A stretch of DNA of 64,000 nucleotides from Azolla caroliniana (taxonomy: Eukaryota > Plantae > Polypodiophyta), in the NCBI GenBank assembly GCA_043228905.1, contig JBHGNT010000012.1:13950001-14014000 (forward strand). Reading direction: 5' to 3'. Of this stretch, positions 1,962 to 54,003 are shown piece after piece (the first letter of the stretch is position 1; each line of letters opens with the position of its first letter). A program made the position numbers and the translations under genes. Under the pieces are notes generated by a model. That model saw nothing but the letters and a program-made list of their open reading frames with translations, was not told the origin of the DNA and searched no databases.

Positions 1962-3740
1962 ACGGAACGGGAAGCTCTAGGGATGATCTACAGTGTGACA
2001 AAGTTTCGGCATTATTTATTTGGAAGGAAGTTTTCCTTCCATATAGATCATTCGACACTCCTCTACCTGGTGTCCAAGGCATCACTCACCGGTAAGTTGG
2101 CCCGGTGGACCTTACTGTTACAGGAATTCGAGTTCAAAATATTCCACTGACCCGGTATACAGCATGCCGTAGCGGATTATTTAAGCCGATTAGAGTCTGG
2201 AGAGACGGGCGACGGAGTAGCGGACGAGTTTCCGGATGCGGAGTTGTTTCGAGTCACTACAGAAACGGCAGCAGATAAAATGGTGGCATAGGAAGACAAG
2301 TGGCTCACAAATATGCACCAGTTTCTGAGCACAGGACTGCCTCTGGAGGAGATGAACCGGGACGAAAGGAAACGCCTGGCGGTGCAAAGCCAACATTTTT
2401 GCTTACTGTGAGACACACTTTACCACAAGGGCGCAGACGGCATATGGAGACGAGCTGTGCGCAACGATGAAAAGGACCTCATACTGAGGGAAGCCCACTG
2501 CGGAGTTGCCGGAGGTCACTATGCCGGAGATGCGACGGCCAGGAAAATATGGCAAAGTGGCCTATGGTGGCCAACTACATTAAGAGATGCTGTACGGTAC
2601 GCAAAAGAATGTGACCTATGCCAGCGAATGGGCCAGCCAACGGAGCAAGCTCAAATGCCACACCAACCTGTACTACCACTCGAACCATTCCAGAAGTGGG
2701 GGCTGGACTTTGTTGGACCGTTCAAACCACCGACAATGAGAACAGGTAATTGGTACGTCATCGTCGCGACGGATTACTGCACGAAATGGGTGGAGGCCAA
2801 AGCCTTAAGAGACAACACCGTTGCGTCAATGGCAAAATTTCTATATGAATACATCTGGTGCTGTTACGGATGCCCAATCGAATTAATAAGCAACCAAGGG
2901 GGGCAGTTTCTCGACCAAGTAGTTGAAAGCCTGACGACATTCTATGCCGTTGTCCATAAACGGAGCACACCGTACTATCCGCAAGCAAACGGGATAATTG
3001 AGTCGATGAACAAAACGCTCCAGAATATCCTCCAGAAGATCGTCAACGAAAACCAAACGGATTGGGATACCAAGCTACATAGCACGCTTTGGGCATACCG
3101 GACAACATACAAAACGAGCATCCGAACAACACCGTTCCGGTTAGCGTTCAGACTAGTGGCGGTCATGCCGGTGGAATTCCAAGTACCAAGCTTACGGATC
3201 CAGCTACGGGAACGGCTGAACGAGAAGGAGTCGGAGGCAATACGGTTAACAACGTTGTGTGAACTCGAGGAACAACGACTGGCAAGCATCCTGCACTTAG
3301 AATTGGAACAACGGTGACGGAAAGCATTTGTCGACCGGCACAGGAAAGGAAATGAAAAAATGTTCAAAATCGGCAAGCCGGTGTTAGTATTTCAGACCTG
3401 GATGGGCAAGATGCCGGGTAAACTACGGTTTAGATGGACCGGCCCGTATTGGCTGACACGTTAGTATAATGGGTCCTACTAGTTAGGGACACTTGCCGGC
3501 GAAGTGCTAGGCAAATGGGTCAACGGATTCAAATTGAAGCCATATAGAGGACCGATGCCCAAGAACCCATTTGAGCAAAGGACCGACACCGGATCGGGAA
3601 CCGGTATGGAAACGGCAACCTATGAGGGAAACGGCAACCACCAAGACGGAGGAGACGGAAAGCCGGTAACTGGGGAGAATGAGGCGACGACAAACTGTAA
3701 TGAGGCCGGTAAGGGTCCGATAGGACCAACGGACAAGTAA
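1962..3740 (+). pseudogene. pol: pol remnant (RNase H + integrase) of B1 with in-frame stops
   Basis: ORFs 1899-2150, 2457-3317 and 3504-3740 lie in one frame, broken by TGA/TAG stops. Confidence 0.9.
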
Positions 3741-4095
3741 CCTCACACTACATTAAAAAAAAAAAAAACGAAGTAATCATGCAAAAGCGAGGTATGAACG
3801 GACAAGAGAGCGAGGAGCGAAAAGGTACGTAGTGGGCATTTAAGCGCCGCCACAGGACATAATGCTATTTTAGTACACGACGCTCGAAAAAGGCGCCTGA
3901 ATGCATAGAGAAAAACCACAGTGCATGGAGACCCTCTCCTTTCGCGAACCCAAGAGCACAGAAGCACCAAGGCGTTGGAAGATCATCAGACGAGAACCTA
4001 CGCACAGAGAACCCCCACTTTCTGAACTCTCTCTCTCTCACTCTCACTCTCATCACCATCCAACCTCGCCACCACAATCCGACCTCGACACAGAC

Positions 4096-6899
4096 ATGGA
4101 CCCGCAAACGCTGTCGGAAGCCGCCAAGAAATGGCTAAAGCAACACGGGCTCGAGGGCTTCTTGACGATTATGGAGGCACCGCCACACAAAGAAGCCGAC
4201 AAGGTGATCAAAGAAATCGACACAGAGGTCATAACGGAGGAGGCGATCCGTGCGTTAACAGGCCTTCCGGAGGGAGGCATATTCACGATCGACAATCCGA
4301 CCTCGGAGCAACTCATCAAGTATTTTGGTGAGTACTCCCTAGCCAGCAAGGGCTACCGGACACAGGGCGACGGAGATATGCTGTTCCGCGAGATTGACCG
4401 TGTGCTCCACGAATACGGCCATGTGTACCCTAGACCCCCTGTCATGCCGTAGAACCGGGCAGGGATGATCATCGCCACTTATGAAGGGATCAAGGTGGAT
4501 TGGCCGGTATTGATCGCAGACGGTTTGTGTGCGGCGATCGAGATCGTCAGAGGAAAAGACAGCAAAGAAGGTCGAGACGGACGGAAGATATGGCATGTAG
4601 TAACGCAGTGGCTCACCTTGCTTGTGCCACCCGTCCAGCCCGTCTAGCCCAAGAAGCGGGGAAGAGTGGCGGACGGCACCCCAAAGACTGCTTCCAAAAG
4701 ACAACAGATGTTGGCCTCTAAGGCCACTAAGGGGAAGGCAACGGACGCAGAACAGGCGGGAAAGGAGAACGCCAGCCGGAAGCGGCCAACGGATGCGCAG
4801 GAGGAACCACCAGTACGGCCCGTAAAGATTACACTCCACCAACCGATGAATAGAGAAGTGGACCCCTTGGCGGCGAAACTCAATGCCGGGACTCAGGAAG
4901 AGGAAATAGAGGAGGAGCCTACAGAGCACCTCCAACGACGGTCGTCGGCAAGGACCGTTGAGGCAGCCGGGAAACGTTCGGACCCTCAGACGGAGGGAAC
5001 ACCGGCTCCCCATACTGAGACTCCCACGCCAAGGGAGGAACCGGAGCCAGTGCGCATGGCACCGGAATCAGAAGCCCCCGCACCACCGGTACCACCGGCA
5101 AGTCTCGTACCGCCAGAGCCGGAAAGGTCAATGCAGTCTCCCTCGGCCAACCAAGAAGAAGCGCAAGGGGAACCAGGACAGCAGGGTGGTCCACGGGCAG
5201 AAACGGAATTGCAACTCGGCGCAATCAGGCGGGACCACCCACCCACAAGCGAGCCTATCGTCAAACCTCCGTGCAAGCGCAACAACAATGCACCGGTAGC
5301 CTGTGGCTCCGGTGGATAGGCGAACAGATTGCCGGAGCAGTGGGGTATATTGAGGCGGAAGAAAGAGCGCAAAGCGAACAGTTGCTCGTCACAACCGAAC
5401 AACTAGAGACGGCCCGGTCCAGAATCCGGTGCCTTGAAAAAGACTTGGATCAGGTCTCGGCAGAAATGGCCAAAATGGCCTTAACGGCAACACAGATCCA
5501 AGCACCGGTGACTTCGGTAAGTGTACAGAATAAAGAAACAGACCAACCTATACATACTAATAAGACCCCGGCAACGGAAACCGTTCCAGAGAGAGATGCG
5601 GTGCAAGCCCAGGAGCTTGCGGAATTGAGAGATGAACTTGCCGCACAAGAAGCGCTAAGGACCCGTGAACGGGAATTGAAGATGGCGGCCGAAGCAGAAT
5701 TAAAGAAGATTGTTGAGAACCTCCGCCGGGCAGAGGAGAGCCTCCGGAAAGGCCATCAAGCTTACGACCGGCTAAGGGAGGAAAAAGACAAAGTGCTGCA
5801 GGAAAAGGACAAGCTGTGGAAGACGGCGGAAACGGAAATTGAACGGCTAAAGGAGGAGCTCCGCCAGCAGAATGACCGCAAGGACCGGGCCCGTCGACAG
5901 ATCAACGTACGGCTCAAGCATAAGACAGATGATTTTTAGCACCTGCACCGGGACTACAAACAGCTGGAAACAGAGCATAAGGAACGGATGGCCGAGCTCC
6001 GGCAGGAAGTTGATCAGGCCGCGACGAGGCTCGCCGACGAAAGAGCGGAAAATACAAGACGGTTGGACGAGGCGGAGAAGGTCCGGATGGAGCTCCAGAG
6101 TCAGCAACAGGAAAAAAGGGAGAGAGCGACAACGGTATTGCAAAAATTACAAAGCACATATCAAGGGAAATTGACGCATTACAAGGAGTAGGCGGACGAC
6201 AACGTCAAAATCATCATGCAATTGAAGGAGGAACGACAAGCTGCGGAGATCAAATCGCAGATGGGAACGGGTCGGATTCAGTGCATCCTTCGAGCATGGC
6301 TGAATCAGACAAAACGCTTGATTGACGAAAGCTCCGTAAGATGATGGACAAAGTGGGCACAAAATACGGTGGAACTCTAATTGCTACGGGCAGACGTGGA
6401 AAACCGGCGGAAGGAAGGAGATGATTGTTACACGTTGACTTCCGAGGACTTCACCGCCATACGGGACGAGCTGGCCGAAGACTTCCAAGTCCTGGCAGAT
6501 GAACAGCTGGTGCAGGTCCGACAACTCGTAGCTTAGCTAGTCGATGATAGGCCGGACGCTCAAATCCAGTTTGAGAGCTACGAGCGGTCCCAGGTTCGGG
6601 AAGAAAAAGCACGGGAAGCGACAACGGTTAACCTTAGTGATGAGGAACCGTCACCGGACGAGGACCAGGCCGGAACCAGTCAACCGGAGACCATTGTGAC
6701 GGAGGGAGCAACGACGGTAACGCTGGTGTCAGAGCAACAAACGGAGGAGCAGCCGCAGCAGCCACCAACGGACCAGTCGCAACAGCCATCAATGGAGCAG
6801 CAGCAACAACAACCACAACAACAACAACAACAACCAATTCCAGATGAACCATTGGAGACTCTTGAACAAAGCATTCTGGATATTTTGGACGAAGAATAG
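4096..6899 (+). pseudogene. Extra 3' ORF of family B (~930 codons: globular N-terminus, Pro/Glu linker, long coiled coil, poly-Q acidic tail), disrupted
   Basis: Collinear ORF pieces 3901-4452, 4465-4647, 4666-5319, 5271-5939, 5988-6191, 6696-6899; homologous pieces in B2 (39880-41096, minus). Confidence 0.75.
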
Positions 6900-6935
6900 C
6901 AAGGGTCGGAAGGTGGATTCGACGTACAAGGTTCT

Positions 6936-6952
6936 GTCCCACGGGCGTGCCA
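6936..6952 (-). other. PBS-like site (TGGCACGCCCGTGGGAC, tRNA-Arg-type) occupying the PPT position of B1
   Basis: Plus strand reads GTCCCACGGGCGTGCCA, 2 nt upstream of the 3' LTR; conserved in B2 at 39829-39845. Confidence 0.75.
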
Positions 6953-6954
6953 TG

Positions 6955-7387
6955 TGTTACCGGCCGGCAAAGGAGTCTAGAGTGTGAAACGAAGGAGTTA
7001 TTTAATTATTAAGGAATGGTTGTAAGTGAGCTATTAGTGTGGATGGACGGACCGGAATTGGTATGCCGTTCCGGATCCGGACCGATCCCGAACAGGTGCG
7101 GATGGCACCGTTTTGTACTACAAACCGGAAACCTATTTAAAGGCCCGGATACAATGTAATGTAGAGCGGATAATTAATGAAGCTTAGTGTTTTTATCTCT
7201 GTGTTAATTGCCGTTCTGCATTCATTGTTATATCTTACGCGTGTGATTATTAAGGACGATCTTGCTAAGTAACCTAATTAAGTCGGATTAATCATTGAGC
7301 CTAATCCTCTTGCCGTAACACCCCTTTGGTGAAGTGTCTTCCGTAGACACCCTGTGTTAGGCCATTGTCCAGCCCTAAGAGTTAACA
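6955..7387 (+). repeat. Family B 3' LTR
   Basis: TG...CA termini with short inverted repeat (TGTTAC/GTTAACA); TATA-like CCTATTTAAAGG near 7130. Confidence 0.85.
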
Positions 7388-9200
7388 GGAACTTCAAGGC
7401 CAAGATATTTGAAGCTTTCCACACATTCAAGTGACTCATTGTTGTACATAATGCATACTTTATCTCTTTTTTGGCTCTTCACAAGCATAATCATTGTTTT
7501 AGAGCTATTGACACTTAATTTAGTAATCCATGCAATTTTTTTCCAATGCCTTCATAAGCTTTTGTGCATCTCCTAAAGTATTTGCAAAAAGCACTACATC
7601 ATCTGCATATAGCAAAAGCATAATCACAACATTCCCAATGACAACTTCTTCAACACATTCTTCCTTTGCAAACTTGGTAACCATTTCTTCCAATTCATCA
7701 ATGCATAGACCAAATACTGTTGGTGAAAGTGGGCATCCTTGCTTAACACCAATAGTGTTTTTGAAAAAATCTGAAAGTCTATCTCTCATATGCACACAAC
7801 ATATAACCTTCTCATAAATTTAGGAAATTGCAAGCATATATTCACTTGGCACCTCAAGTTCTTCCATTCGCCTCCAAAGATGCTCACGAGGTACCATATG
7901 TTACGGGCATGACCATTTAATATCCCGTGGTGAGAATTTACCGTAGTATTCTATACACGTGGATAAGTGTGAGGGTTAAACGAGAGTGTAAAGAAGGGGA
8001 GGATTACTTTTAATCCTCGGGATTGAGACAACCCATTAGGTCAAGTGTGAACTTGCCTGGGGGCCTTGGGTATCGCTATAAATAAGAGGCCTAGCTACCC
8101 TCATTTAATCATCTTTTTGACTACATCAAGACTCTGCTCTTGTGGTGGGTCAACTCTTGTAGCGAGCGCGCCAACACCAGGTACGACTCGACGCCACGGC
8201 GGTGGTATGGGACACCGATCGAGGCTCGAGTCCGTCTCGATCCCTTCGCTCGGGGGTGGTCGGGTGGATCGGCACCCTTCTTTCTTTTTCTCCTTTCTAT
8301 CTATCATTTGTTTATCCTTATTTTAAGCTTACTTTAGTACTTAGATCTCTAATACCATATCAAAAGCTTTCTTGAAGTCTACAAAGCAACAATATAAACC
8401 TTTACCTCTAAGGCGACTTTCCTCCATTAATACTCGAAGGGTGACAAGATGATCAATGGTGCTATGGTGTTTTCGAAAGCCAGCTTTTCCGTAAGATCTC
8501 TTACCATTTTTTTCAGCCCAACCCATACACTTATCTTTGATTCCATTATACATCAAAATTGTTTTTCCATTAATGAGCCAACCATGATGGTTTGATAGTT
8601 GTTTACATTATTGACATCTCCACCTTTATGTAAAGGTTTGATCCAATTTGTAGTCCAATCGTACGTCATACCATGTTGCAACACAACATTAAACATATCG
8701 CTTATCCATACATGTGCTTCCTTTCCTATCCATTTGAGCATTTCAACCTTTATACATTGAAGATCTCTTGCATTTCGAGAGGCCAATTTCTTAAGTTCTA
8801 TGCATATATCTTCACTTGTAAAGAAGGGAGACATATGTAAAAGAGAACCATAACACATCATCTTTCCGGCAAGAGATAGCTCATATAAATTCTTACAATG
8901 CATAGACAAGTCATGAAGAGTTAAGTCACCATAACTCTCAACATGTTTCCCCTTTAGATTTCCCCAAAATTTAGCACATGCATGTGCTTTTTCTTTCGTT
9001 TGGATAAATTGTTGAGTAACTTCCCATATTCTTCTCTTTCTTTGAATAAGCCTTTTACACTCATGCAAATGCTTTTGGTATTTCTCTTTATCCTTAACTA
9101 CATCCAAAACCATAAGGCACTTTCGAGCTTCACGACATTCTTTATCAAACCATTTTTTCCTAAGTTTCTTGGTGCATTTTCTAGAGTCTTCTAAGACCAA
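7388..9200 (-). mobile_element. Degenerate non-LTR retrotransposon (RTE/RTEX-like LINE) RT
   Basis: WFDKEC, AGFRKHHSTIDH, FVDFKKAFDMV, GVKQGCPLSP, LYADD and FKYLG motifs in order; interrupted by a solo LTR and by B1. Confidence 0.85.
7899..8354 (+). repeat. Solo LTR of chromovirus family E, TSD CCATA
   Basis: Homologous to the LTR at 58809-59264; CCATA at 7894-7898 and 8355-8359; removing it restores LINE peptide AFDMVPREHLW. Confidence 0.9.
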
Positions 9201-9737: not shown

Positions 9738-12700
9738 TGATAGGGTGTATAAGATAATAGATAGTTATACACTATATGAGGGTTTGACCAAACCGATTAG
9801 ATGGAGTTGAAAATCATAATATATTATATAGCTCTAGGTAATTATGATTAGAGAGTATAACTCAAGAAACTAAGAAAAAAGATAGAGAAAGCGAGCAAGA
9901 AATAAGAATGTTCTGATATTCCAACATCAAGAGAATACAAAGGAGACAAACTCCACATTGAACTAAAACCAAAGACCTTCCTCTTCTAAGACACTTCCTC
10001 TTCCACAAAGACACTTCTTCCTAACACTCCTCATCCACTCTTTGACCTTCACTCTTAACCCCCCTCCTCACTAATATCACTTCTTCTTTTATAACCTTCC
10101 TCTTCTTATCCACGTTCATGCTATTTTTAGAAGCTTTTTATCTCCCTATTTTTAGCTATGACACATCGACCTTCTAATCGTCATATCTCCCTCATCTGAT
10201 ATCCAAATTAAGCGATTTAAAAAGCTATAGAAAGCTCTTTTTACAGGCTTTCTAATCCATATTTAAACGTGATATTTGGATAAAAAACCAGGGAGTTATG
10301 ACCATTCTATTTTTACTGTTTTTTATAGTCTGCGTTTTCTCTTTTTACTTTTCTCTTGGTCTCGTACTTTTACTTTTGACTTCTTCCCTAAGGTCTTAGT
10401 TCGTGTTCTTATCCTCAAAAGGTGAATTATCTATACTTTATATTCTCCTAATGTTCAATGGCTTAGATTCTAAAAACACTTTCACATTTAGCCCTCCCCC
10501 TTGTTAGAGGCTAAGCCATTTATGGCGAAGCACTTATTGGCAGTACTTAACAAACAAAAGCTCTCTCGCCAATCTCTTGGCTATAGACAATGAGAGAGAT
10601 ATAATAAAATAAAAAGATGTGAGTAAAACCCCCGCTAATCGGTAGGAAAAACCTCACATTCTCTACAAATAAAAAAGATAATCACTATTACCATCTTCCT
10701 CTTTGTTAATAGAGAGAAAGATGGGTCTACAATATGGACTATTAAGAAAATAATGTATGGGGAAACAAGTCCACTTCTTGCTCCCATCCATCCGTATCAA
10801 CAATATCATTAGTAACTTGGGGAATATAAGTAGGTCCCCGAGTTACATACTTTTTAAGGCGCCATCCGTTCACTCGATAAGAATGAAGTGCTCCATCCAC
10901 ATCTTTCAATTGGTAACTTCCGTTGTCATACTTTTTGTGAACCACAAAGGGTCCTTCCCACTTATTATCAAGCTTTTGTCCTTGAATATAATCATATCTA
11001 TTATCATACCTAAGAACCAATGATCCTTCTTCAATGTGGTTGCCCTTGTGTTTTTTGTCATATGCCTCCTTTCTCTTCATTGCTTGATTTAAGTAATGCT
11101 CCACAGCTTCTTCTCTTGAATATTGTAGTAGATGGTTGCTCGCTAAACGACTCATCACATCATTTCCTTTTGAGCGATGCGATGCCTCCATTAGTCTATT
11201 ACTTTTGATCTCAAGTTCGATCGGAAGTAACGCTTCTTTTCCATAAACCAAATAAAAAGGAGTAAAACCTGTGGAGGATTTATAAGAAACTCTATAAGCC
11301 CAAAGAGTATCATCCAAATACCTATCCCATGTTCTTACTTTGTCTTGCACTAACTTTGTCAAATTCTTCACTATAAGCCCATTCACTTTCTCAACTGCAC
11401 CATTTGCTTGAGGATAATAAGGCGTTGAATATCGATGCTTAATCTTCAACTTGCTTAATAGACAAGCTAACATTTCACTCCTAAAACCGGGTCCATGATC
11501 GGATACAATCTCCATGGGAACTCCAAATCTAGTACAAATATTCTTATACACAAATTGGGCTACATCTTTGGCTTTAATCGAGGAAGTTGCTATAGCTTCC
11601 ACCCACTTTGTCATGTAGTCAATGGCCACCAAAATAAACTCTTTACCATGTTGAGTTTTCGGAAGAGGTCCTACTGCATCAATTCCCCATTTCTCGAATG
11701 GAGCAAACACCACAATGGGTTGTAAAGGTCCACTTTGTAGATGTCTTATTCCCGCTTTTTGACATGCATCACAAGATCTACACCAATCATGCACATCCCT
11801 ATGGATAGTAGGCCATGTAAAACCAATTAGTAAAATCTTTCTTATCATTATATCATGGGCTAAATGCCCACCACAAACTTCTTCATGCAACTTAAAGAGT
11901 ATCTTTATAATCTCGCTTTTGTTAGGAACTCTTCGTAAAACTCCATCTTTCCCTTTGTTGTACAAATCTTCACCCACCAAATGATATTGTGAAGCCTTTG
12001 CCACCAAACGCTTTCTTTGCAAAGCATTGAGGTTATTTGGAAACTCTCCTTTATTAAGAAAATTATGTACTTCCTCTAGGGAGTCTACATCTTTGCACGT
12101 CTCCAAAACACCAACGAAACCTTCCTTGATCTTATCTAATTGGGCTTGAGCTAATGCATCTGCTTCTTTATTGTATAATCTCCCCACATGCTTAATCTGT
12201 ATCTTTTCAAAAGACCTTAGTAGACTCATTGCTTCTTTATAAAAATTTCTAAGCCCATCACTTTGACATTTCCAATTGCCTTGAATTTGTTTAATTACCA
12301 ATAAGGAATCACCCTTAAGAATTAATCTTTTTATCTTCATAGCTTTACCTAGACGAAGACCATAACACAAGGTAGCATACTCCGCTTCATTATTTGAATT
12401 CACACCACTTAATGTAATACCTTCACTTTTTACTCTGTCTCCTTGAGGATCCTTGAGAATAATCCCACCCACGGCTATGTTTGTGGCTTTGCGAAATGCC
12501 CCATCAAAGAATAAGGTGAATGCATCCTCCATATCCGGCTCGGGAAGTGCCTTTCGTAGCTTTACCAAGTCTTCTTCATGAAAGGTTTCTCTAAAGGTGA
12601 GAAGATCCGCCAATTCGGCACGCATAGTTGATTCCAATTTGACTTCAAAATCAAACTCCGCCAATAGTAGAGCCCATTTAGCAATTCGTGCTGAAATGCT

Positions 12701-15700
12701 CACATGTTGGAGTACATATGGGAGTAATGACATGCTAGTGATTATTACAAAATGATGAGGTAGTAGAAAGCTTCTAAACTTTTTACAAGCATATATAAGA
12801 GCTAACATCCACTTTTCTACTTCTAAGAATTCTTTCTCTACATCAGACATGGCTTTACTAATAAAATATATAGGATGCATAAGCCTATTTTCAGAATCTT
12901 GTTGCATAAGAATGGCTCCTATAGCATGAGATCCAACACTAAGAGAAAGAAAGAAGGTAGATGTTCTATCAGGTGGCTTTAGAATAGGAGCATTACATAA
13001 TAGTTCTTTTATTCTTACATATTGCTCTTCAGTTGTAGATGTCCACAAGAAGTTGTTGGTGCGAAGAATAATGCGAAAAGGATAGAGAATTTGGGCCAAC
13101 ATATGAATGAATCGTTCAAAGTAACGAACTTTTTGAACAAATACCTCCAAATCTTTGATACTCGTGGGTGTTGTCATCTTTTGAATTGCTTCAATCTTTG
13201 AGCTATCAACTTTGATTCCTTCTTGAGACACCACATGACCAAGCATCACCACCTCCTTTTCACCTATGTGACACTTCTCTGGGTTGAGTTGCATTTTGCA
13301 TTCCTCCAATCTTTTGAATGCCAAGCGAACCTTTTCCAAATGGTCTTTCCTGCTACTATAAATTGCAAAGTCATCCATAAAGACTCTAACAAACTTTCCA
13401 AAGAATGGTTGGAATACATGAATAGCAAGACGATTAAATGTAAAAACAGCATTTGTGAGTCCAAAGGGCATGCATCGATATGCAAAGCATCCCCATGGAG
13501 TGATGAATGTCGTCTTCTTTTGATCCTCTTCCGCAATACGAATTTGAAAATAACCTGAATAGCCATCACAAACAGAGTACATTTCATGACCCGCAATTTC
13601 ATCTAATATTTCATCTTGGAAAGGGAGAGGAAAGTGATCCCTCTTGGTAGCCGCATTTAGAGGTTTGTAATCAACACAAACCCTCCATTTTCCATTCTTT
13701 TTAGGTACCACCACAATGGGCGAAACCCATTCAGAATCTTCCACTGGGTAAATGAATTGTGCACGCAACAAAGCTTTGACTTCCTTTAATAAGGCCTCCT
13801 TTTGCACGTGACCTAGCCTTCGCAACTTTTGCGCAACGGGAGTTGTACCCTCCTTTAGATTTATGTGATGTTGGATGACATCTACACCCCTAATATGAGC
13901 ATAATCACTAATGAAAAGGTTAGGAAATTCAGAAATCAAATTAATAAATTGTTGCCTCTCTTGCCCTTTAAGATCTTTAGAAATCATCTTCTCTTTTTGC
14001 TCCATAGTAATTAAACCTCCTTCATCATCTTCTTCCTTCAAAACGGCATATGATGTGGTCATTTCCCATTCTGACGAGGAATCTTCACTTTCATCACTTT
14101 CATATGCGGACCCACTATCATATTCAGTTATTCCATCTTCTTCTTTCTCAATAAGTCTTTGTTGCCGCATATCATAATGTATGCTCACTCCTTTTGATGG
14201 CGTTATGGTCATCAAACCTTTGCTCCAATCTTGGACAACATTGAGTTCTTGCATCCATGGTCGTCCTAGTACCAAAGAATATGACGGTCCTTTTAGTGGT
14301 ATTACATGAAAATCCATGGAAATGCTTACCCCAAAACACTTGATGACAACATCCTCCACTATGCCAATGCAATGGACCACTCCACCATCGGCTACAGCCA
14401 CTCTTGCCGAAGATGACCTACTTATAGGAATTCCCACTTTGTTTACCACAAATTCAGAAATCAAGCCTACTCTAGCACCACTATCAACCAACGCATCTTT
14501 GATGTGAAACCCTTTGATGGAGACGGGGACGGTGGGTCGTATGTCCTTTCGATCTTCTACTCGCACGATTCCCACATAATGCACAGTCTTCCGACTTTGG
14601 CGAATACTTGCAAGTCGCCCCCACTCCTTTCGTAATGTGGGAGATAATTGGAGAAGTTGCGGCCATGTTATCCTTGGTCCACTTGAAATCAACTCATGCT
14701 TCAAATTGAAAGCTTCTACACCTTCACCCATAGGAATGTCCTCCATCTTGATCTTTCTTCTAGAGTGTCTCCTTCTCAATTTTTCCTCTTTCTCATTCTC
14801 CTTAGACTTCTTCTTTTGTCTTGAGGCACTAGATTCTCCTTCAACTTCTTTCTCCTTTTGCGAGGACCTTGTCCTTTTCACAGGAGCTACTTCAAAAGAA
14901 TTATCACTATCATCAATAAAATTAAGAAGATTCACATTATGAGGAATTGTAGGAACCTGAGCCATAGGGAGTGTTACGTTTCCTTCGACTTCATTGTTGT
15001 TAGGTCGTTGTCCATTCCTTTGCACTTGATAAATGCCTCTTCCCATGACTCTTTGTTGTCGATGAGGACATCTTGTTGAGATGTGTCCCTCCTCTTGACA
15101 AGAATAACAAATTACACCGTGATGCCCTCTAGAGCCACCACCATCGGGAATAGTGTTGTGAATTGCTTGGGATTGTCGCAAGTGGGTCATCACTTCATCA
15201 AAGCGCCGATTTACCAATGCCATGGTATCTTGTTCACTCCTCACTTGTTCAACTTCTTGGGATATACTTGTTGGGTTTATTGTTGTGGTGGTATACACAT
15301 TTGGAAACACTTGTCCCCCATGCACAATTGAAGATGAGGCTTGAAAGTTGGCACGAGGCATCAAATTTGCACCCAAAGCCGTCATTTGGGGATCCCCCAA
15401 GGAGCTCATCATCTTCACTTGTCGATCATAAGCTTGACAAACTTGGATAAGAGCTTGAAACGATGTGGGATCCTTCAAGTTTGCTTCCAAACGGAAATAC
15501 ATATCAAGACCCATCTTGAATCGTTCCATTTTAAACCACTCGTCTTCAGTGCCGCCACGAAGACGAATCCATGTAGTCCACAAATCCTTGAAATTTCTTT
15601 CATACTCAGTGAAACCAATTGGTGATTCCATCTTTAGTCGAAATAGCTCTTCCCTTACTTCGGTTGCACTTCGTCGTTGAATATATTTGGCACGAAACTG

Positions 15701-16738
15701 GTGCACCAACAATTGATATGCTCCCTGTTGGTTTGGAGGAAGAGAGTCATACCAATCTCGAGCTCGACCATAGAATGTAGCTACTAATAAAGGTAACTTC
15801 TCATTGTCGGTGATGCGTCCAATAGAGACAGCATGATGCTCAAAAGATGCCAAAAAGGCACCCGCATCTTGTGTTCTTTCACCTGAAAATGCAAATTGCA
15901 TAGCTAAGTTAATGTAATATAGTAACACAATTAAATGATAAGTTCTCCCTCCTATACGGAAAGGGTCCACCCTCCCTGGAGCGCCAAAATGATAGGGTGT
16001 ATAAGATAATAGATAGTTATACACTATATGAGGGCTTGACCAAACCGATTAGATGGAGTTGAAAATCATAATATATTATATAGCTCTAGGTAATTATGAT
16101 TAGAGAGTATAACTCAAGAAACTAAGAAAAAAGATAGAGAAAGCGAGCAAGAAATAAGAATGTTCTGATATTCCAACATCAAGAGAATACAAAGGAGACA
16201 AACTCCACATTGAACTAAAACCAAAGACCTTCCTCTTCTAAGACACTTCCTCTTCCACAAAGACACTTCTTCCTAACACTCCTCATCCACTCTTTGACCT
16301 TCACTCTTAACCCCCCTCCTCACTAATATCACTTCTTCTTTTATAACCTTCCTCTTCTTATCCACGTTCATGCTATTTTTAGAAGCTTTTTATCTCCCTA
16401 TTTTTAGCTATGACACATCGACCTTCTAATCGTCATATCTCCCTCATCTGATATCCAAATTAAGCGATTTAAAAAGCTATAGAAAGCTCTTTTTACAGGC
16501 TTTCTAATCCATATTTAAACGTGATATTTGGATAAACAACGAGGGAGTTATGACCATTCTATTTTTACTGTTTTTTATAGTCTGCGTTTTCTCTTTTTAC
16601 TTTTCTCTTGGTCTCGTACTTTTACTTTTGACTTCTTCCCTAAGGTCTTAGTTCGTGTTCTTATCCTCAAAAGGTGAATTATCTATACTTTATATTCTCC
16701 TAATGTTCAATGGCTTAGATTCTAAAAACACTTTCACA
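9738..16738 (-). mobile_element. Intact Tat-like Ty3/Gypsy LTR retrotransposon, 7001 bp, TSD CCTAG
   Basis: 749-bp LTRs 9738-10486 and 15990-16738 (about 3 mismatches by eye); CCTAG at 9733-9737 and 16739-16743; PBS TGGCGCTCCAGGGAGGG (tRNA-Arg-type) at ~15970-15986; PPT AAGGGGGAGGG at ~10492-10502. Confidence 0.97.
10742..15901 (-). CDS. gag-pol: Uninterrupted Gag-Pol polyprotein: Gag-CCHC-protease-RT-degenerate RNase H-additional RNase HI (aRH)-integrase
   Basis: CYSCQEEGHISTRC knuckle, LVDSGA protease, FMDD RT, FFDGA...SNNEAEY...GDS...NKEADALA RNase HI, HHCC/WGID/WEGPF integrase. First ATG after the PBS is at 15901 (the track start 16024 lies in the LTR). Confidence 0.95.
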   Translation of the reverse strand: MQFAFSGERTQDAGAFLASFEHHAVSIGRITDNEKLPLLVATFYGRARDWYDSLPPNQQGAYQLLVHQFRAKYIQRRSATEVREELFRLKMESPIGFTEYERNFKDLWTTWIRLRGGTEDEWFKMERFKMGLDMYFRLEANLKDPTSFQALIQVCQAYDRQVKMMSSLGDPQMTALGANLMPRANFQASSSIVHGGQVFPNVYTTTTINPTSISQEVEQVRSEQDTMALVNRRFDEVMTHLRQSQAIHNTIPDGGGSRGHHGVICYSCQEEGHISTRCPHRQQRVMGRGIYQVQRNGQRPNNNEVEGNVTLPMAQVPTIPHNVNLLNFIDDSDNSFEVAPVKRTRSSQKEKEVEGESSASRQKKKSKENEKEEKLRRRHSRRKIKMEDIPMGEGVEAFNLKHELISSGPRITWPQLLQLSPTLRKEWGRLASIRQSRKTVHYVGIVRVEDRKDIRPTVPVSIKGFHIKDALVDSGARVGLISEFVVNKVGIPISRSSSARVAVADGGVVHCIGIVEDVVIKCFGVSISMDFHVIPLKGPSYSLVLGRPWMQELNVVQDWSKGLMTITPSKGVSIHYDMRQQRLIEKEEDGITEYDSGSAYESDESEDSSSEWEMTTSYAVLKEEDDEGGLITMEQKEKMISKDLKGQERQQFINLISEFPNLFISDYAHIRGVDVIQHHINLKEGTTPVAQKLRRLGHVQKEALLKEVKALLRAQFIYPVEDSEWVSPIVVVPKKNGKWRVCVDYKPLNAATKRDHFPLPFQDEILDEIAGHEMYSVCDGYSGYFQIRIAEEDQKKTTFITPWGCFAYRCMPFGLTNAVFTFNRLAIHVFQPFFGKFVRVFMDDFAIYSSRKDHLEKVRLAFKRLEECKMQLNPEKCHIGEKEVVMLGHVVSQEGIKVDSSKIEAIQKMTTPTSIKDLEVFVQKVRYFERFIHMLAQILYPFRIILRTNNFLWTSTTEEQYVRIKELLCNAPILKPPDRTSTFFLSLSVGSHAIGAILMQQDSENRLMHPIYFISKAMSDVEKEFLEVEKWMLALIYACKKFRSFLLPHHFVIITSMSLLPYVLQHVSISARIAKWALLLAEFDFEVKLESTMRAELADLLTFRETFHEEDLVKLRKALPEPDMEDAFTLFFDGAFRKATNIAVGGIILKDPQGDRVKSEGITLSGVNSNNEAEYATLCYGLRLGKAMKIKRLILKGDSLLVIKQIQGNWKCQSDGLRNFYKEAMSLLRSFEKIQIKHVGRLYNKEADALAQAQLDKIKEGFVGVLETCKDVDSLEEVHNFLNKGEFPNNLNALQRKRLVAKASQYHLVGEDLYNKGKDGVLRRVPNKSEIIKILFKLHEEVCGGHLAHDIMIRKILLIGFTWPTIHRDVHDWCRSCDACQKAGIRHLQSGPLQPIVVFAPFEKWGIDAVGPLPKTQHGKEFILVAIDYMTKWVEAIATSSIKAKDVAQFVYKNICTRFGVPMEIVSDHGPGFRSEMLACLLSKLKIKHRYSTPYYPQANGAVEKVNGLIVKNLTKLVQDKVRTWDRYLDDTLWAYRVSYKSSTGFTPFYLVYGKEALLPIELEIKSNRLMEASHRSKGNDVMSRLASNHLLQYSREEAVEHYLNQAMKRKEAYDKKHKGNHIEEGSLVLRYDNRYDYIQGQKLDNKWEGPFVVHKKYDNGSYQLKDVDGALHSYRVNGWRLKKYVTRGPTYIPQVTNDIVDTDGWEQEVDLFPHTLFS

Positions 16739-38071: not shown

Positions 38072-40724
38072 GGTCGGGTTTCTTCGATATCTACCCGTCT
38101 CTGGCGCATGCCAGTGGATGCGCGATTTGGTGGGGGTGGTTGTCGTGAAGAAAACCGGCCATAGGCGGAATCGGAGAGAAAGCGCGTAAACCGGCCCTTA
38201 CACGGATGGACGCGTGACTTGATATTTTGTACACGAACCGGTGGATGTAAATACTAAGCCGCGCACATTTATTAGAGGGGGATTGTGCATATCCCTGTCA
38301 AAGGGACAGGGAATAAAGCGAAGGGACAGGAGAAAAAGAAGAAAAGGGGGAAGAAAAGAGTCGGGGGGGGGGGGGGGGGGATCGCGCGAGGAAGGAGGAA
38401 GCGCTGCTGCAGAATCGAGGGCGGAGCTCTCTCTCTTCTCCTCCAGCCGTCGTTCTCTGCGGGCGTCGGGAGTTCGCTACCTCTGCTTCGGGGACAGCCC
38501 GTGTGCTTCCAGCAGAGTCTCTCCTTTCCCTCCTTTGTTTTTGGGAGTCGTGTGACTGTCGTCGGTGTGTGTGAGTAGGGTCCCCATGTCGGGTCCGTCG
38601 CCGCCTTGTCGGTTGTAACCGTCGGAGCTTGTAATCTCTTGTCATTGTAATTAAGTGTTACGTTCTATATCTCCTTTCTCGCTTCTACGTGTCTGTGAAT
38701 CTCTCTCTCTGTCTCTCTCTCTCTCGCTCCTCGGTCCAAGACCCCCGTGGTGCCGCCCCTTTCTACACGTACGCACGTAACAACGCGGTGATACTCGGCG
38801 AGCCGTATATTACGGCGGCATGCATGGAAACAAAGGTGTTGGATAATGGTTCCGCGTACACATGCGTGAAGAGCCAAGATGGGCGACACTCCATCCAATT
38901 TCTGACAGTGCGACCAAACCATGAGCGTAACCGCGAGACCCTCGACAGTGATAGGGATTTTTAGAGAGGGCTATCAAGGCGTGGGGCCACAATAATCCGA
39001 ACACCCCGGAGGAACCCCACACATGTACCATGGGTAGGAAATTTTGTTTCTCCGACAACGGAGGTTGTATGATAACCGGCATTAGCAGCTGGGAAAAGAC
39101 GCGGGCAGAGGAACATCTCAGGGCGTGCGGAGTCCTTGGCCCCGACGAGGAGATTGGCAGCACCGTGGAGGCGGTCTCTTTTGACAACACCTTGGGAGAA
39201 TTAAGGAAGGCGCTCGAAGAAGGCCTCAGTGAAGACCGGACTATTCCAGAGCTCACATCCTGAAGTTGATGGAGCTACTAAAGCAGAAGGTGGAGATGGG
39301 CATCCTCGAGCCATCGAGCGCCCCATATTCGAATCGGTGGTTAACCATGCCGAAGAAGAACGGCACGTTGTGCTTTATTCAAGACTGTTAATCCTTAGGT
39401 CCGGACAATGGCCTAACACAGGGTGTCTACGGAAGACACTTCACTAAAGGGGTGTTACGGCGAGATAACTTAAGACACAATGATTAATCAGAATTAATTG
39501 GCTACTTAGCAATATGGCATTAAATTTGATACGCGCGTATGATAGAACAATTAGTACAGAACGGTAATCAACACTTAAAGATAAAACAAGAAGCTCTATT
39601 AATTATCCATCAAAGTTTTACATTGTAACTAAGCCTTTATATAGGTCATCGGTGCTGAGTACAAAACGGTGGCAACCGGACTTGTTCGGAACTGGTCTGG
39701 ATCCGGATCGGCATACCGATTGCGGTCCGTCCGTTCACGTCCCACTATTCAACTTAATTAAAATAGATTCCGAATAACAATCCCTTTCACATTCTGGTCT
39801 TTAACTCCTTTGCCGGCCGGGTAACACATGGCATGCCCGTGGGACAGTACCTTGTACGTCGAATCCCATTATCCGACCCTTAGCCTTCGTCCAAGATATC
39901 CAGAATACTCTGCTCCAGGGTATCCAATGGTTCTTCGGAACTCTGTTGTTGTTGCTATTGCGGTTGTTGTTGTTGTTGTGGTTGTTGTTGTTGTTGTTGT
40001 GGCTCCAGCTCCTTCGACTGTTGCTCCTTAGATGGCGTATGTTCGGCTCCCGGTACCGGCGGTTGTGGCGGTGATTCCTCCATTAGCTGCTCTGCCGGAT
40101 TTGACCCTAGTTGACTCGCCCCAGCCTTGTCTCCATCCGGTCCTTGCTCCGGCGATGATTCCTCATCGCTGAGGTTGACGGTCGCTGCTTGCTTTGCGTC
40201 TTCTTTCCATAGCCTGGTTCGCTCATAGCTTTCAAACTGGATTTGAGCATCCATTCAATCATTGTCCAGTTGTGCTACCAGTTGCCTGACCACTGATGAC
40301 TGTTCCTCTGCCAGAGTTACAAAATCTTCGGCTAACTCATTTCTAACAGCGGTGAAGTCCTCCTTTGTTAGCATGTAGCAGTCGTTGCCATCCTTCTACC
40401 GGTTTTCCACGTCTGCCCTTAGCAACTAGAGCTCGACTGTGTGTTTTGCCCTATTTGTCCCACCATTGCGCGGAGCTTTCGTCAATCAAGCGTTTTGTCT
40501 TGTTCCTCCATGCCTAGACAATAAACTGGATCCGCTCCAATCCCATATTCGATTTGTCCTCCGCGGCTTGCTGTTCTTCCTTCAATTGCTTGATAAGCGC
40601 CACCGTGCTTGCCTCCTGCTCCCGGTAATGTGACAATTGGTGTTGGTAGGTGTTCTGCAACCTCTGCAATACCATTGTCGCTCTTTCCTTCTCTTCATAA
40701 TGCTGCTTATGGAGCTCCATACGT

Positions 40725-41078
40725 TCTTCCGCGGCCTCCTCCAGTAGCGTGGTTCTTTCAGCCCGTTCCTCCGCTACCGCCGTCTCCGCTCGATGCACCT
40801 CTTGCCAGAGCTCTGCCATCTTCCCTTGTTGTTTCTTATGCTCTTCCGCGGCCTCCTCCAGTAGCGTGGTTCTTTCAGCCCGTTCCTCCGCTACCGCCGT
40901 CTCCGCTCGATGCACCTCTTGCCAGAGCTCTGCCATCTTCCCTTGTTGTTTCTTATGCTCTTCCGCGGCCTCCTCCAGTAGCGTGGTTCTTTCAGCCCGT
41001 TCCTCCGCTACCGCCGTCTCCGCTCGATGCACCTCTTGCCAGAGCTCTGCCATCTTCTCCTGTTGTTTCTTATGCTCC
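40725..41078 (-). repeat. Three near-identical 120-bp in-frame tandem repeats in the B2 extra ORF
   Basis: EHKKQQxKMAELWQEVHRAETAVAEERAERTTLLEEAAE x3 in ORF 40514-41272. Confidence 0.92.
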
Positions 41079-44057: not shown

Positions 44058-44328
44058 TGACGGGAACTGGTCGTTCCTTATGCGCAACGCTCGGCCACAA
44101 CCGAGCTTAGAATGATACACAGAAAATGGGAAATAAGACGCGACACAAAGAAGAAGAAAATACACAGGAGGTTTACGTGGAAAACCCCAAACTAGGGGAA
44201 AAACCACGGCAGCCCACAGGCTGCAAACTGTCACTATGTAAGAATGTACAAAATAGTGAGTTCACAGAGGCAACGACCTCGGACTCACAATCTTCGCCAC
44301 AAGCGGCGGTTACAACAGAGGCAGCGAC

Positions 44329-48585: not shown

Positions 48586-51500
48586 ACTATCACTCTGTAA
48601 AGTAATACAACAGGGAGCACAGAGGCAACGCCCTCTTGCTCACAATCTTCGCCTCGCGGCGGTTACAACAAAGACACAATCTCTGTATATCACTCTCTCT
48701 CTTACGCACTGTACAGAGGTTACACCAATAACTCTATCATCATCCTATTAAGTTTGCCCTAGATCATATTTATACTAATATGACTTTCGGGCTATTTACA
48801 AATATAGGGCCCCATTGGGCTCTCTGGGACATATTTACATATATGTCCCTTCCATCCGATGAGAGGTTCTCACCAGGCCTGCAACATCCGGTTCTCACCG
48901 AGTCTTCCTTGCCGGGTACTCGTCATCCGGTTCTCACTGGGTCTTCCGTTGCCGGGTATTCCACATCCGGTTCTCACCGGGTCTTCCGTTGTTGGGTACT
49001 CCACATCCGGTTCTCACCGGGTCTTCCGTTGTCGGGTACTCCACATCCGGTTCTTCTCACTTCCCATCCAGAGGGACCTATTTCCTAACATCTAGTTGGG
49101 ATGCTTTTACACGCTGCGACACCGCCATTTCCCTTTCTAGTGCCTCTTGTGCTTGCCGTAACTCCCGGATCGCTTCTTTATCTGATTCCCCGTCGGTCCC
49201 GTCCGGTTGCAGCATGTATGGTGATACTGCTTCGGCTACATCAATTTCGAACAGTGGTACGATCTTCGGATTTTCTTGTAAGTATTGATCAACCTCTTCG
49301 TCCGCTAATCCTTCCAACATGTTGACACATTCCGCATATAGCGGCGTCAATTCCTTGCCGGTACCGGACCGTGGTTGAGTTGGTACTCGTACTTTCGCTT
49401 TTCCACACCGAAACGTAATTATATTGTTCCTCCAGTTTTGCTTGATGTGTGTTGTTTTTAACCAAGGGCGTCCCAACAATAGTGGGTAAGCTCCCTGAGC
49501 CTGTAGCTAGAGAACTACTGTGGAAATGCGAAATGTGTGACCCCCGATGGTCACTTCCAGATCATGTATTAACCCGGTCGGCCGTACTGAGCTTGTGTCT
49601 GCCATCCAAAGTCAAAACGGGCATGGTTCCCAGTCATGGATTCCTAGAGTGTTACACATTTGGACGTTGATCACGTTCACGTTGGATGCTCCATCGATAA
49701 TCGTGTCGGGTAGCTCTTTTCCTTTCACGATGGCTGTGATTGTCGGACTGCTCGTGTCTACCACTGCCAGTCGTTCCTCCGAATTTGAAAAGAATGCTGG
49801 AGCCGGTGGTGTGTCGGTTGCCGTCCTTCCTGTCTTCAGTCCTTCCGTGAAGCATGGTACCAGTTGCAATAGCCGGCCTAACAGCAACGTTATTTGGCAT
49901 TCTTGTAACACCTGCCATGTTAGGTTTTCGGGCTGCCCCGGGCCGGTGAGCTCTTTGGCATTCTTCTTTTGTTGTTCGAGATCTGCCGCATTCCGCTCGT
50001 TTGCCTTTTTCACCCATTCGGTTGCCTACTTCCGGATGGCTTCTTGAGTTTCCCACTCCGTCTCTTCGATCGCTATACCGGACATCTTGTGCCGGCCGGT
50101 AGCGCTCCTCTCGCCTCCAATGTTCTTCTTCTTCCTCTCAGTTTCTTCGTGGTTCAATTTTCTAAACCGGTGGTGTTTGCCGATTTAACAAGTTATACTC
50201 ACCCCATTCCATTGTGTGACTTCTAGAGTGGCAAAGCAAGCATTGGGAACGCATGGTGCATTCCAACGCCAAATGTCCGGCATTCATGCATGTCATACAA
50301 TAAATTGCTTGCCGGAAACAGAGGTCCACATTTGTTGGTAGCGCACGCTGAAGTGCGCCCATGGTTAGCCATGAACTTGAGTTTTCCATTTCCCGAACTC
50401 GGTCGATCACTTGATCTATGTTGCTGGTGTGGAAATCAATGACGGTGCACACCGTTCGTAAGGGTTCCCGGAGTGCTGCTAAGAATATGGCCTTTGTTTC
50501 TTCCTCCAGTGGTGTCCGGCTGAGCTCACTGTGGATCCGCTAGAACCGGATGACAAATTGTTGAATGTTCTCCGTTGGTTCCTGTCGGATATTGTAAAAT
50601 AAGCTTACCATTTCCCGTTGTTCCATATCCTTGTGAAAGAGATGCAAAAACTTTGTCTTTAATGTTTCAAACGTGGGGATGGTGTTGGGATCTTGTGTTC
50701 GGTGCCATCTAGCGACCGGTCCCTCTAGGGTCATGCCGAACTCTGCCCTTTTTGAGGGTTTCTCTTCAGCCGCATTTAAGCGTTGGGACACATGGTTTGC
50801 CTCCCAGGTCTGCTGAAACGCATGGACGTGAGCTTCCGCGTCCAGATCATCCCGGTATCTGGGATATTGGAACGGCATATCGTCGTCTGGTGTTGGTACG
50901 CGGCCTGGTGGTGTTGGTGGTCGTTCCTCCTCCTCTGTCGGTGTCGGAGGTCTTTCCCGGTCCTCTGTCGCCGTCGGAGGTCTTTCCTGATCCTCTTTCG
51001 GTGTCGGAGGCTTCTCCTCCTCGACTTCCGGTGTCGGAGGGCTCTCTTCCTCGACTTCTGGTTCCGAAGTGTGGTCGACTTCCGGTCTGTTTGGGGTGTC
51101 GTTCCTGCTCCGGTAGTTTGTCTGCGCGCTGTATTCCCCTTCCAAATCCGATTCAAAAGCCGAAATTGCTTCGGATTCGCCTTCGCCCGTTGCCAATGCC
51201 TGGAGAAGGGATTCTGCTTCCCGAAGGCTGCTTAGGCTGCTTCCTTCGTCCGGGTAGTCATTTTGTGGTAACCGAAGTGACTCCTTGGCCACTCTCCGGA
51301 TCACCTTGGAAAATGAGCGATCCGCTTTGATTTCTTCTGCCACTTGCTGGAAAGCCTCTCGCTTCCTTAGTTGTTCAGCCAGTCTCCTTGCTCGCTCCAT
51401 AACCGGGTCGTTCGTTGGTCTAGTCATCCATTCCCGCCGATGTTCGTTGCGATTGTGCAGGAGTCGTGGTCGTCAAAAACTGTGTTAATCCTTAGGGCCG

Positions 51501-54003
51501 GACAATGGCCTAACACAGGGTTTCTACGAAAGACACTTCACACAAGGGGTGTTACGGCGAGATTATTAAGACACAACGATTTATCAGACTTAATTGGCTA
51601 CTTAGCAATATGGCATTAAATTCGATACACACGTATGATAGAACAATTAGTACAAAACGGTAATCAACACTTAAAGATAAAACAAGAAGCTCTATTAATT
51701 ATCTGTCAAAGTTTTACATTGTAACTGAGCCTTTAGATAGGTCACCGGTGCTGAGTACAAAACGGTGCCAACCGGCACCTGTTGGGAACTGGTCTGGATC
51801 CGGATCGGCATACCGATTCCGAATAACAATCCCTTTCACATTCTGTTCTTTAACTCCTTTGCGCTTATCGTGGCACTGGCACTCCGAAAAGCGGTTTACG
51901 GTAAGAAGGTCCCGATTTACGTGATCGTAGACACGAACCCGACCGGGATAGGATGGGTGATCAACCATGAGGACAAGAACGGCGCGAGGTTCCCCAACCG
52001 GTTCGGAGCAAAGGTACTTAGTGAGCGACAGAGAGGATACGCCCAAGGCTGACAAAGACTACTTGATCGGGACGGAGGTGATAATCGAGACGTACTGCCT
52101 ACCAATCCTCAATATGGTTTCCGGATGCGCGACGCCGGACCTGGCAATGCTCAGGTGGATCACATACATTAAGTCCCTGAATCCAGAGATACGGCACATC
52201 TTCGAGAAGGACAACGCCATGGCCGACATGCTTTCGAGAGCGCGGTTTGATGAAGAAGAAGACATGGTTTCGAAGGACGAGGAAGTTGGAGTGGACTTCT
52301 TCGAGTCGGCTTACGTGACGACGAGGGACAGGAGCACTCCGGCGCTTAATGAGTTTGACGAGGGCGAGTACGATGGGGACTGGCTCCAGATTGGCAAGTT
52401 CCTAAATCGCTGACGTCGGACGCGACGTGGACGAGAGAAGAGGCTAACCGGATCTGGAAGAAAGTGTACTGGTTCTTCCTACAAGACGGAAGCATATGGA
52501 AACACCCGAAGAAGCGAGGCGGCGTCCCACTCCGAGTAGTGGCGAAGAAGGAAGAGCAGGAGGCGTTGCTAATGGCGTATCGTGAGAGTCCTTGGGCCGG
52601 ACATCGCGGGACGTGGGCCATGTTCGAAAAGCTGAAGGAGAAGTATTGGTGGTCGGGATTGTACCAGGACGTTCATCAGTTCATAACGACTTGCGAGAGT
52701 TGCCAAATGCACTCCGCGATCCGACATCGAGACGAGCTACACCCAACCTACCCGCCAACCGGCCACTTCAAATGGATGGTGGACTTAGTGACGATGCCAA
52801 TGGGGGTAGGGCAGATGCAGTACCTAGTGCTAGCGCAAGAGGACTTGACGAATCAAGTGGAGGACCGCGCATTGCTGAACAAGACGACTGCAGTCGTGTG
52901 CCGGTTCCTAATTGAGGAAGTGGTGTGCTGGTACAGGTGCGTGGGAAATATCGTGGCTGACCAGGGGGAGCTAGATGCGCAGGAAGCCGACGAGAACCCT
53001 AAACCAGCTAGGGGTCAAGCTTTCCCTCGCTACGGCGTACAATTCGAAGGTGAACGGGAAGGTAGAGCATGGGCACGGGCCGATTGTGAAGGCGTTAGTA
53101 CGGGCTTGCAAAGGACAAGTCGGGAATTGGCCGCGGCTACTACCTTATGCATTGTAGGCGGACCGAATTACGCATAGTTCGGTAACCGGGTTCATGCCAG
53201 CAGAGCTGATGTATGGGCAGAAGCCGATCATGCCGGTAGAGCGAACGATCTCCTCGTGGGTGGCGGTGGACTGGAGAGACGAGATGAGTCGAAAAGAGCT
53301 ACTAGTTGCGCAGATTCGACAACTTGAACGAAGACTGGAGGACATGGAATGGGCAAAGGCGAAGCTGCATGCGGCAAAGGCAAGGAATAAAAGTTGGTTC
53401 GACCGAACTCACCGGATACGACCGAAGAAGATCAAAGAAGGCGATTGGGTACTGGTTTATGACAGCAGCCTCGACAACCAGCACAAGGCAACACGCAAGT
53501 TTGCGAGAAGGTGGTTCGGGCCTTACGTCGTAACAAGCGCAAACGACAACGACACCTACCATCTCGCAGAGCTCGACGGAACAAGGATACTTGTGCCGGT
53601 GGCCGGGAAGAGGATTAAAGCATTCAAGAAGCGGCACGAGGACAAACTGGACCCAAGGGGCGTAGACGATGACTAGACCGGAGCAAATACAAATTCGGAG
53701 AGCGAAGGGTGAACACGAGCCGGTTTTCTCCGGCATTTGTCCCTCTCCGGCACATACCAGTGGATGCACGGTTTGGTGGGGGTGGATGTCATGAAGAAAA
53801 CCGGCCTTAGGCGGAATCAGTGTAAAAGGTGCATGAACCGGCCCTTACGCGCGGGCACAAGGATTGATAAGTTGTACATAATTAGGAATAGGTCGTCTCA
53901 TGTAAATGTATTAGGTAGTACACATTTAGCACATTGGCACAGTGCCGAATCCTCAGTCTTTCGGGGTTTGGCTCAAGGGGGTTGTGGTCAGGAATGCGGG
54001 GTA

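Follow-up and report, generated by a model that had tools for sequence, protein, structure and literature searches.

The window (the whole 64-kb stretch of DNA that was analysed) contains two copies of an LTR retrotransposon family, denoted family B, each with a short tRNA-derived sequence next to its 3' LTR (Table 1). The 5' half of copy 1 is absent from the window. Downstream of its integrase, a nearly open frame of ~3.6 kb extends up to position 6899. This extra open reading frame (hereafter, the tail ORF) runs in frame 1 to ~5316 and in frame 3 across 5019-6899, contains a few stops, and terminates with TAG (6897-6899). A Pfam search with this region (3901-6899) yielded no family. The region is rich in coiled coils, and its second half, a long coiled coil, carries the label 'chromosome segregation ATPase' in one source. 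Beyond the tail ORF, 17 nt that correspond to a tRNA 3' end in the sense orientation and terminate in CCA (block S) are separated by the dinucleotide TG from the LTR, which starts with TGTTAC and ends with GTTAACA.

Table 1. Features of the two family B copies, in window positions.
Feature	Position	Strand	Basis or remark
Integrase of copy 1, zinc-binding and core domains	2457..3317	+	Pfam PF17921, PF00665
Extra (tail) ORF region 3' of the integrase, copy 1	3901..6899	+	Homologues on plant-derived contigs
Stretch like tRNA positions 49-58 (T-stem 5' half and T-loop start), with one extra base	6912..6922	+	Comparison with tRNA-Arg(UCU) genes
13-nt insert at tRNA A58, small hairpin	6923..6935	+	Comparison of the families
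Block S, sense tRNA-Arg(UCU) positions 59-76 with CCA, without C66	6936..6952	+	Comparison with tRNA genes
TG spacer between block S and the LTR	6953..6954	+	Comparison of junctions
3' LTR of copy 1	6955..7387	+	Start boundary backed by the nested copy in contig L001
3' LTR of copy 2	39386..39826	-	93% identity with what remains of the 5' LTR
tRNA-derived module of copy 2	39829..39869	-	Block S at 39829-39845, one G-to-A change
End of the extra (tail) ORF, copy 2	39870..40822	-	Homology to copy 1
gag ORF of copy 2	50540..51427	-	PF03732; starts 55 nt inward from the 5' LTR
Decayed 5' primer binding site, copy 2	51464..51475	-	One G-to-A change relative to TGGCGACCACGA of the relatives
5' LTR of copy 2	51483..51864	-	Outer ~13 nt cut away

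Copy 2 retains the site, as stated in the earlier note: its block S differs by one mismatch from the 17-mer of copy 1 and is again located 2 nt away from its LTR. The two copies are homologous only across ~5985-7388 (copy 1 coordinates), at 73-78% DNA identity, and thus represent separate insertions; the LTRs of copy 2 are about 78-80% identical to that of copy 1. With up to three mismatches allowed, the 17-mer occurs at only two sites in the 64 kb, against a chance expectation of 0.10, and none of 100 shuffles reached two. The interior of copy 2 is rearranged, with tandem arrays of 54 and 40 bp periods, each present twice (41798-42231, 44473-44852; 48329-48553, 48868-49092); one of these arrays, when translated, is a repeated coiled-coil segment of the tail ORF. 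A Ty1/copia element with gag, integrase and RT domains is nested in this copy (~43085-47729, minus strand).

Relatives of these elements were found by protein searches with gag and the tail ORF, on contigs from one ENA assembly series. The layout, which the earlier note proposed to look for in related species, is present in six related plant contigs, which together with copies 1 and 2 provide eight junctions. The contigs L001-L003, L124 and L126 are evidently plant DNA. Two other contigs with tail-ORF matches (L125 and L127) were rejected, being low-complexity sequences from which the junction is absent, and no further copies were found in a search of viral contigs. In L003 and L124, long intact ORFs encode, in collinear order, gag with a zinc knuckle, protease, RT, RNase H and integrase (Pfam). 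The related copies contain an intact gag-protease ORF of 1028 aa and a pol ORF of 1003 aa, and such long intact ORFs indicate that the layout belongs to recently competent elements. In four of the contigs (L002, L003, L124 and L126), a single LTR is flanked by the end of the tail ORF and the block on one side and by gag on the other side. This structure is probably due to the assembler looping through the LTR, and as a result, both junctions of one subfamily can be read together.

The element is a Ty3/gypsy LTR retrotransposon, with the canonical domain order, flanked by direct LTRs whose termini are TG and CA, and a primer site beginning with TGG just 3' of the 5' LTR. Its lineage appears to be that of a non-chromovirus with an extra 3' ORF. 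The second, archaeal-type RNase H of the Tat type had no Pfam match in the pol ORFs of L003 and L124, where ~110 residues lie between RNase H and integrase.

The orientation of the elements is normal. The integrase and tail ORFs of copy 1 point toward the block, gag of copy 2 follows the opposite LTR, and in four contigs gag, pol, the tail ORF and the 5' TGG site are collinear. The combination of a normal 5' primer site with normal sense excludes inversion, and mis-orientation was accordingly rejected. The earlier note had reached the same conclusion on orientation by invoking the ORFs and the TATA box of the LTR; this motif is nearly palindromic and by itself leaves the orientation unfixed, so that it is gag, pol and the 5' site that decide. 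The LTR boundary was fixed by contig L001, in which a family B copy is inserted in the integrase zinc-finger coding region of another gypsy copy (L001:560-716) and the LTR starts with TGTTAAC directly at the interrupted coding sequence. This start (TGTTA) coincides with the one initially proposed and rules out the block as part of the LTR; the tRNA-like block lies outside it. Given this fixed boundary, the plus strand, by definition, starts within 1-2 bases of the CCA of the block.

No polypurine tract directly precedes the 3' LTR in any of the eight junctions. In both copies in the window, purines make up 45% of the 20 nt that precede the LTR, compared with 70-80% in the ordinary G-rich tracts of the two neighbouring elements (9738-16738 and 21137-28649), in agreement with the original observation that this family lacks such a tract. 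The former neighbour is a young LTR element on the minus strand, with 99.6% identical LTRs, a CCTAG target duplication, the primer site TGGCGCTCC... and an ordinary G-rich purine tract. The latter has 98% identical LTRs, a primer site that starts with TGGTGAACCCGACG and a normal G-rich purine tract.

A scan of metagenome contigs for the T-loop followed by the acceptor sequence, in forms that either contained or lacked one extra base, resulted in at least 120 matching stretches. Among the matches listed, ARAGORN identified tRNA-Arg(UCU) on 98 of the stretches, and the ends of these genes consist of the T-loop, CCCAC, C or T, and GGGCGTG; two of the tRNA-Arg(UCU) genes, on contigs L004 and L063, belong to the ENA series that also yielded the element contigs. 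Block S matches positions 59-76 of tRNA-Arg(UCU), including the CCA, at 17 of the 18 positions, with position 66 missing. A host tRNA without the extra base was considered and rejected: among the matches listed, none of the eight gap-free stretches is a tRNA. The site is, then, what the earlier note had recognized in copy 1, the sense 3' end of tRNA-Arg(UCU) located 2 nt from the 3' LTR, and this identity holds against real tRNA genes; the extent assigned to it does not, given that C66 is missing and the tRNA-derived module is longer, spanning positions 49-76 with a 13-nt insert exactly after A58. In one of the contigs of a sister family (L036; see below), 9 bases of the 11-nt T-arm-like stretch exactly match the tRNA. 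Neither a full nor a partial tRNA was detected by ARAGORN in the window, where an Rfam search gave only chance-level matches.

In eukaryotes, the CCA is added to tRNAs post-transcriptionally. The presence of the CCA in the block therefore points to derivation from a mature tRNA, that is, via reverse transcription. In retroviruses, methylated A58 is a stop for the reverse transcriptase when the tRNA primer is copied, and the break of the tRNA identity at A58 looks like a footprint of copying a modified tRNA. The insert itself can be drawn as a hairpin in which AAG forms the loop and 4 bp the stem; at two of these pairs, both partners differ between the families. This hairpin is tentative because only three haplotypes are involved and the folding energy is unremarkable. 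Compensatory support is confined to the inner 4-bp stem, RNAalifold returned a weak, different fold, and the DNA folding energies were no better than those of shuffles.

On minus-strand DNA, the complement of block S reads like a primer binding site. Like a canonical site, it is complementary to a tRNA 3' end including the CCA; unlike a canonical site, it is located on the opposite strand, beside U3 of the 3' LTR.

The block is better conserved than its flanks, as the earlier note required of a functional site. When contigs of four runs, from three related organisms, were placed on positions 6000-7600 (matches from 80% identity), the summed contig depth across 6918-6971 was ~5x that of the flanking bins in every one of the four runs. 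These placements also point to a high copy number. In each of the eight junctions, two nucleotides separate the block from the LTR; these are TG in seven cases and CG in the remaining one. Two contigs, L036 and L004, represent a sister family, family C, in which the end of the tail ORF, the module and the 2-nt spacer are the same as in family B and the LTR bodies are unalignable. When the junctions of families B and C are compared, alignment is restricted to ~50 nt that begin with the T-arm-like half and reach the first TGTT of the LTR. Comparison of the consensus sequences of the two families shows that the tRNA-identical stretches flanking the insert are invariant, whereas the insert, the spacer and the LTR bodies diverge. 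Differences confined to single copies inside the block are scattered transitions off an intact consensus. The T at 6933 in copy 1 is a private change, the family base being A.

The two families differ in their 5' primer sites. In five family B contigs, a spacer of 7 nt separates the LTR end from TGGCGACCACGA, and gag follows ~45 nt further on. A separate 5' site before gag is thus present, as previously claimed, but the copy 2 sequence quoted for it is a decayed version. This family B site differs from the tRNA-Arg(UCU) complement; a scan of viral contigs for a tRNA with the fitting 3' end gave only prokaryotic or phage tRNA-Asp genes, and eukaryotic tRNA-Arg(UCG/CCG) presumably has such an end. 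In family C, the 5' site of L036 is the exact complement of tRNA-Arg(UCU) over 35 nt (L036:196-235). At the corresponding place, L004 carries the complement of the whole 76-nt tRNA including the CCA (L004:1190-1265); in this contig, synthesis of the plus-strand strong-stop DNA seems to have read through the entire primer tRNA. Between this complement and the 3' block of L004 there are ~450 nt, a spacing that suggests a short non-autonomous derivative, and the upstream LTR lies off the contig. Judging by these sequence matches, a single tRNA, tRNA-Arg(UCU), corresponds to both ends in family C, and family B has a different 5' site. The retention of the block in family B despite the different 5' site indicates that the block is independent of pairing with the 5' site. 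The distance between the LTR end and the 5' primer site is 7 nt in family B (L002:884-940, L124:1037-1090) and 5 nt in family C. On the linear DNA, the right end would consequently bear more than the two usual extra bases; at the 3' LTR, the tRNA-derived site leaves exactly two extra bases.

It is most likely that the block sets the start of the plus strand, either through tRNA-Arg annealed to minus-strand DNA or through an RNA primer acting in cis. Priming at the block and the nature of the primer molecule are what we infer from the anatomy of the junction. Our preferred reading, to which we assign a probability of roughly 0.4, is that mature tRNA-Arg(UCU) gave rise to the block, which as a cis element would have replaced the polypurine tract and would set the plus-strand start by recruiting a host tRNA. 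In its complete form, this reading holds that host tRNAs prime both strands, one at the usual 5' site and the other, tRNA-Arg(UCU) or its 3' fragment, at the edge of U3, with the polypurine tract lost; we consider this possible, if marginally less probable.

Under this scheme, minus-strand DNA synthesis would copy the block, after which RNase H would clear the template RNA. The exposed complement, TGGCACGCCC..., followed by CA and the LTR, would constitute a second primer binding site, to which tRNA-Arg(UCU) would anneal with its 3' end, either as the intact molecule or as a 3' CCA fragment, to be extended via TG into U3-R-U5. The second tRNA primer would be removed by the same RNase H activity as the first one, and the two leftover bases would be trimmed by the integrase. 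The module could have originated when the reverse transcriptase switched templates to a packaged mature tRNA during minus-strand synthesis, stumbled at the modified A58 and then returned to the genome, in an ancestor that already used tRNA-Arg(UCU) at the 5' site, as family C apparently still does.

Several observations favour priming by a host tRNA. The block occupies the very position at which a plus-strand primer has to end, no purine tract is present, and the match to the tRNA extends over 17 of 18 positions including the CCA. Seen from the minus strand, every one of the eight junctions has the textbook arrangement of a primer site, LTR-CA-TGG, with 2 nt as the spacer. The tRNA-identical stretches are fixed while the insert, the spacer and the LTR bodies drift; family B keeps the block independently of its 5' site; and the tRNA identity breaks exactly at A58. 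Other considerations weaken this reading. Because C66 is missing in every copy, perfect pairing would be limited to the last 11 nt, followed by a bulge, and this loss is fixed. Conservation also includes the T-arm-like half and the hairpin, which are not needed for simple annealing of a tRNA 3' end. The related copies come from one plant group, mostly from short or circularly assembled contigs, and we know of no precedent among LTR elements for in vivo tRNA priming on a DNA template.

The same anatomy can be accommodated, with fewer new assumptions, by a primer of tRNA origin that acts in cis: the RNA of the genomic block itself would survive RNase H and prime the plus strand, without participation of a host tRNA. 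We regard this as somewhat unlikely. Such a primer would alter only the sequence within a known mechanism, and its position and 2-nt spacer would be the same as with a host tRNA. The RNA-DNA duplex of the block would resemble the duplex between the tRNA-Arg(UCU) primer and its copied site, where RNase H already cuts at the CCA end. The loss of C66, which is fixed in both families and never restored, suggests that an exact match to the tRNA is not required, and the conserved hairpin and T-arm-like half would fit an element recognized by an enzyme. However, at 45% purine, the block is unlike known RNase H-resistant primers; the family B 5' site fits another tRNA, which makes a shared cutting specificity less neat; and fixation of the tRNA-identical parts alongside a drifting insert is left unexplained. 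The block could also be a fossil, a scar of a past template switch to a tRNA that has no role of its own and is kept within a constrained junction, in which case some faint or overlooked signal would direct priming. That the block has not been refreshed from the tRNA is indeed indicated by its missing base, its insert and the extra base of the T-arm-like stretch, but this explanation appears quite unlikely, considering that the block is the sole part of the junction still alignable between families with unalignable LTRs, that it shows the highest depth across three organisms, and that the changes in single copies are scattered transitions off an intact consensus. Furthermore, a primer must, by definition, end at the LTR edge, and nothing else is present there.

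An alternative role for the block, as a mimic of the tRNA 3' strand, would be long-range pairing. Its partner would be the 5' primer site or else the 5' acceptor strand of the primer tRNA, which is freed once that tRNA has annealed; such contact would bring the genome ends together and aid strand transfer, in the manner of the two-part primer site of yeast Ty3, the plus strand being started from another primer. In family C, the complements at the 5' site (35 nt in L036, 76 nt in L004) make the two sites mutually complementary, as such pairing would demand. In family B, the 5' site differs and this pairing is missing, and neither the lack of another plus-strand primer nor the exact 2-nt distance to U3 is explained; we consider this role improbable, slightly more so than a fossil. 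Finally, an annotation artefact, that is, a wrong LTR boundary, an inverted interior or a chimera of nested elements, could be suspected from the state of the material: copy 1 is without its 5' half, copy 2 is interrupted by the Copia element and has a cut 5' LTR, and four contigs link the tail to gag via a single LTR, which may be an assembly loop. The boundary is nevertheless confirmed by the LTR start behind the interrupted integrase in L001, gag, pol, the tail ORF and the 5' site are co-directional in four independent contigs, and the same junction recurs in eight sequences from two families, so that such an error is hardly credible.

What these elements present, then, is an LTR retrotransposon with a non-purine, tRNA-derived candidate start site for the plus strand, one that is real, well above chance, family-wide and conserved, and for which the proposed mechanism is plausible. 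To our knowledge, a purine-rich, RNase H-resistant primer is treated as universal in retroviruses and LTR retrotransposons and serves as a hallmark for annotation tools. Here, an abundant and apparently successful group of elements lacks the purine tract and carries a conserved piece of a mature tRNA instead. Whether the primer is a host tRNA or a cis-acting RNA, this would be a second solution to the problem of plus-strand priming, and C66 is a single base that would distinguish between the two. The break at A58 may be a record of reverse transcription across a modified tRNA base. Viewed on the opposite strand, the 3' junction mimics an ideal 5' LTR with its primer site, and for this reason such families may be mis-scored or assigned the wrong orientation by LTR annotation pipelines in which a purine tract is mandatory.

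In the literature and the REXdb supplements, we found no case of a sense tRNA 3' end replacing the purine tract; an older description in a subscription journal is possible. The REXdb survey reports tRNA-Arg primer sites for Ogre, Retand and TatIII, with purine tracts as the rule. The Athila elements (preprint) have an extra ORF after pol, a tRNA-Asp/Asn primer site and a conserved purine tract junction; family B shares the extra ORF but differs in the primer site and in the absence of the purine tract, which sets it apart from that lineage. In the Helenus elements, which retain a normal purine tract, a tRNA-like sequence with A and B boxes inside the LTR has been interpreted as a promoter for RNA polymerase III (PMC10886601). 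These elements resemble ours in that a tRNA-derived sequence is built into an LTR element, whereas the block described here lies outside the LTR, lacks the tRNA 5' half and has an interrupted B-box region.

One counterpart of the block is the polypurine tract of retroviruses and LTR retrotransposons, with which it would presumably share the job of fixing the plus-strand start, and with which it does share the place before U3 and the short spacer trimmed by the integrase. In contrast to that tract, the block is 45% purine and consists of a mature tRNA 3' end with CCA, and its primer may come from outside the genome. In sequence, the complement of the block is instead similar to a canonical primer site, with the TGG start, the match to a tRNA 3' end and the CA that connects it to the LTR end. 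The canonical site lies on the plus strand beside U5; the complement of the block lies on the minus strand beside U3 and would yield plus-strand DNA. It further differs in that one base is missing and the match resumes past A58, across the 13-nt insert.

Yeast Ty3 reportedly has a two-part primer binding site, the 3' part of which is complementary to the primer tRNA. Ty3 thus resembles the families described here in combining a 5' site with a tRNA-related sequence close to the 3' end of its genome; unlike that sequence, the block is in the tRNA sense rather than complementary, and in family B the block and the 5' site correspond to different tRNAs. Hepadnaviruses have no LTRs, and their plus strand is primed by the capped 5' end of the viral RNA, which is translocated from DR1 to DR2. 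The common theme is a plus-strand primer other than a purine tract that anneals to a short matching site on minus-strand DNA, but in the elements analysed here the role would fall to a host tRNA or to a tRNA-like segment of the genome.
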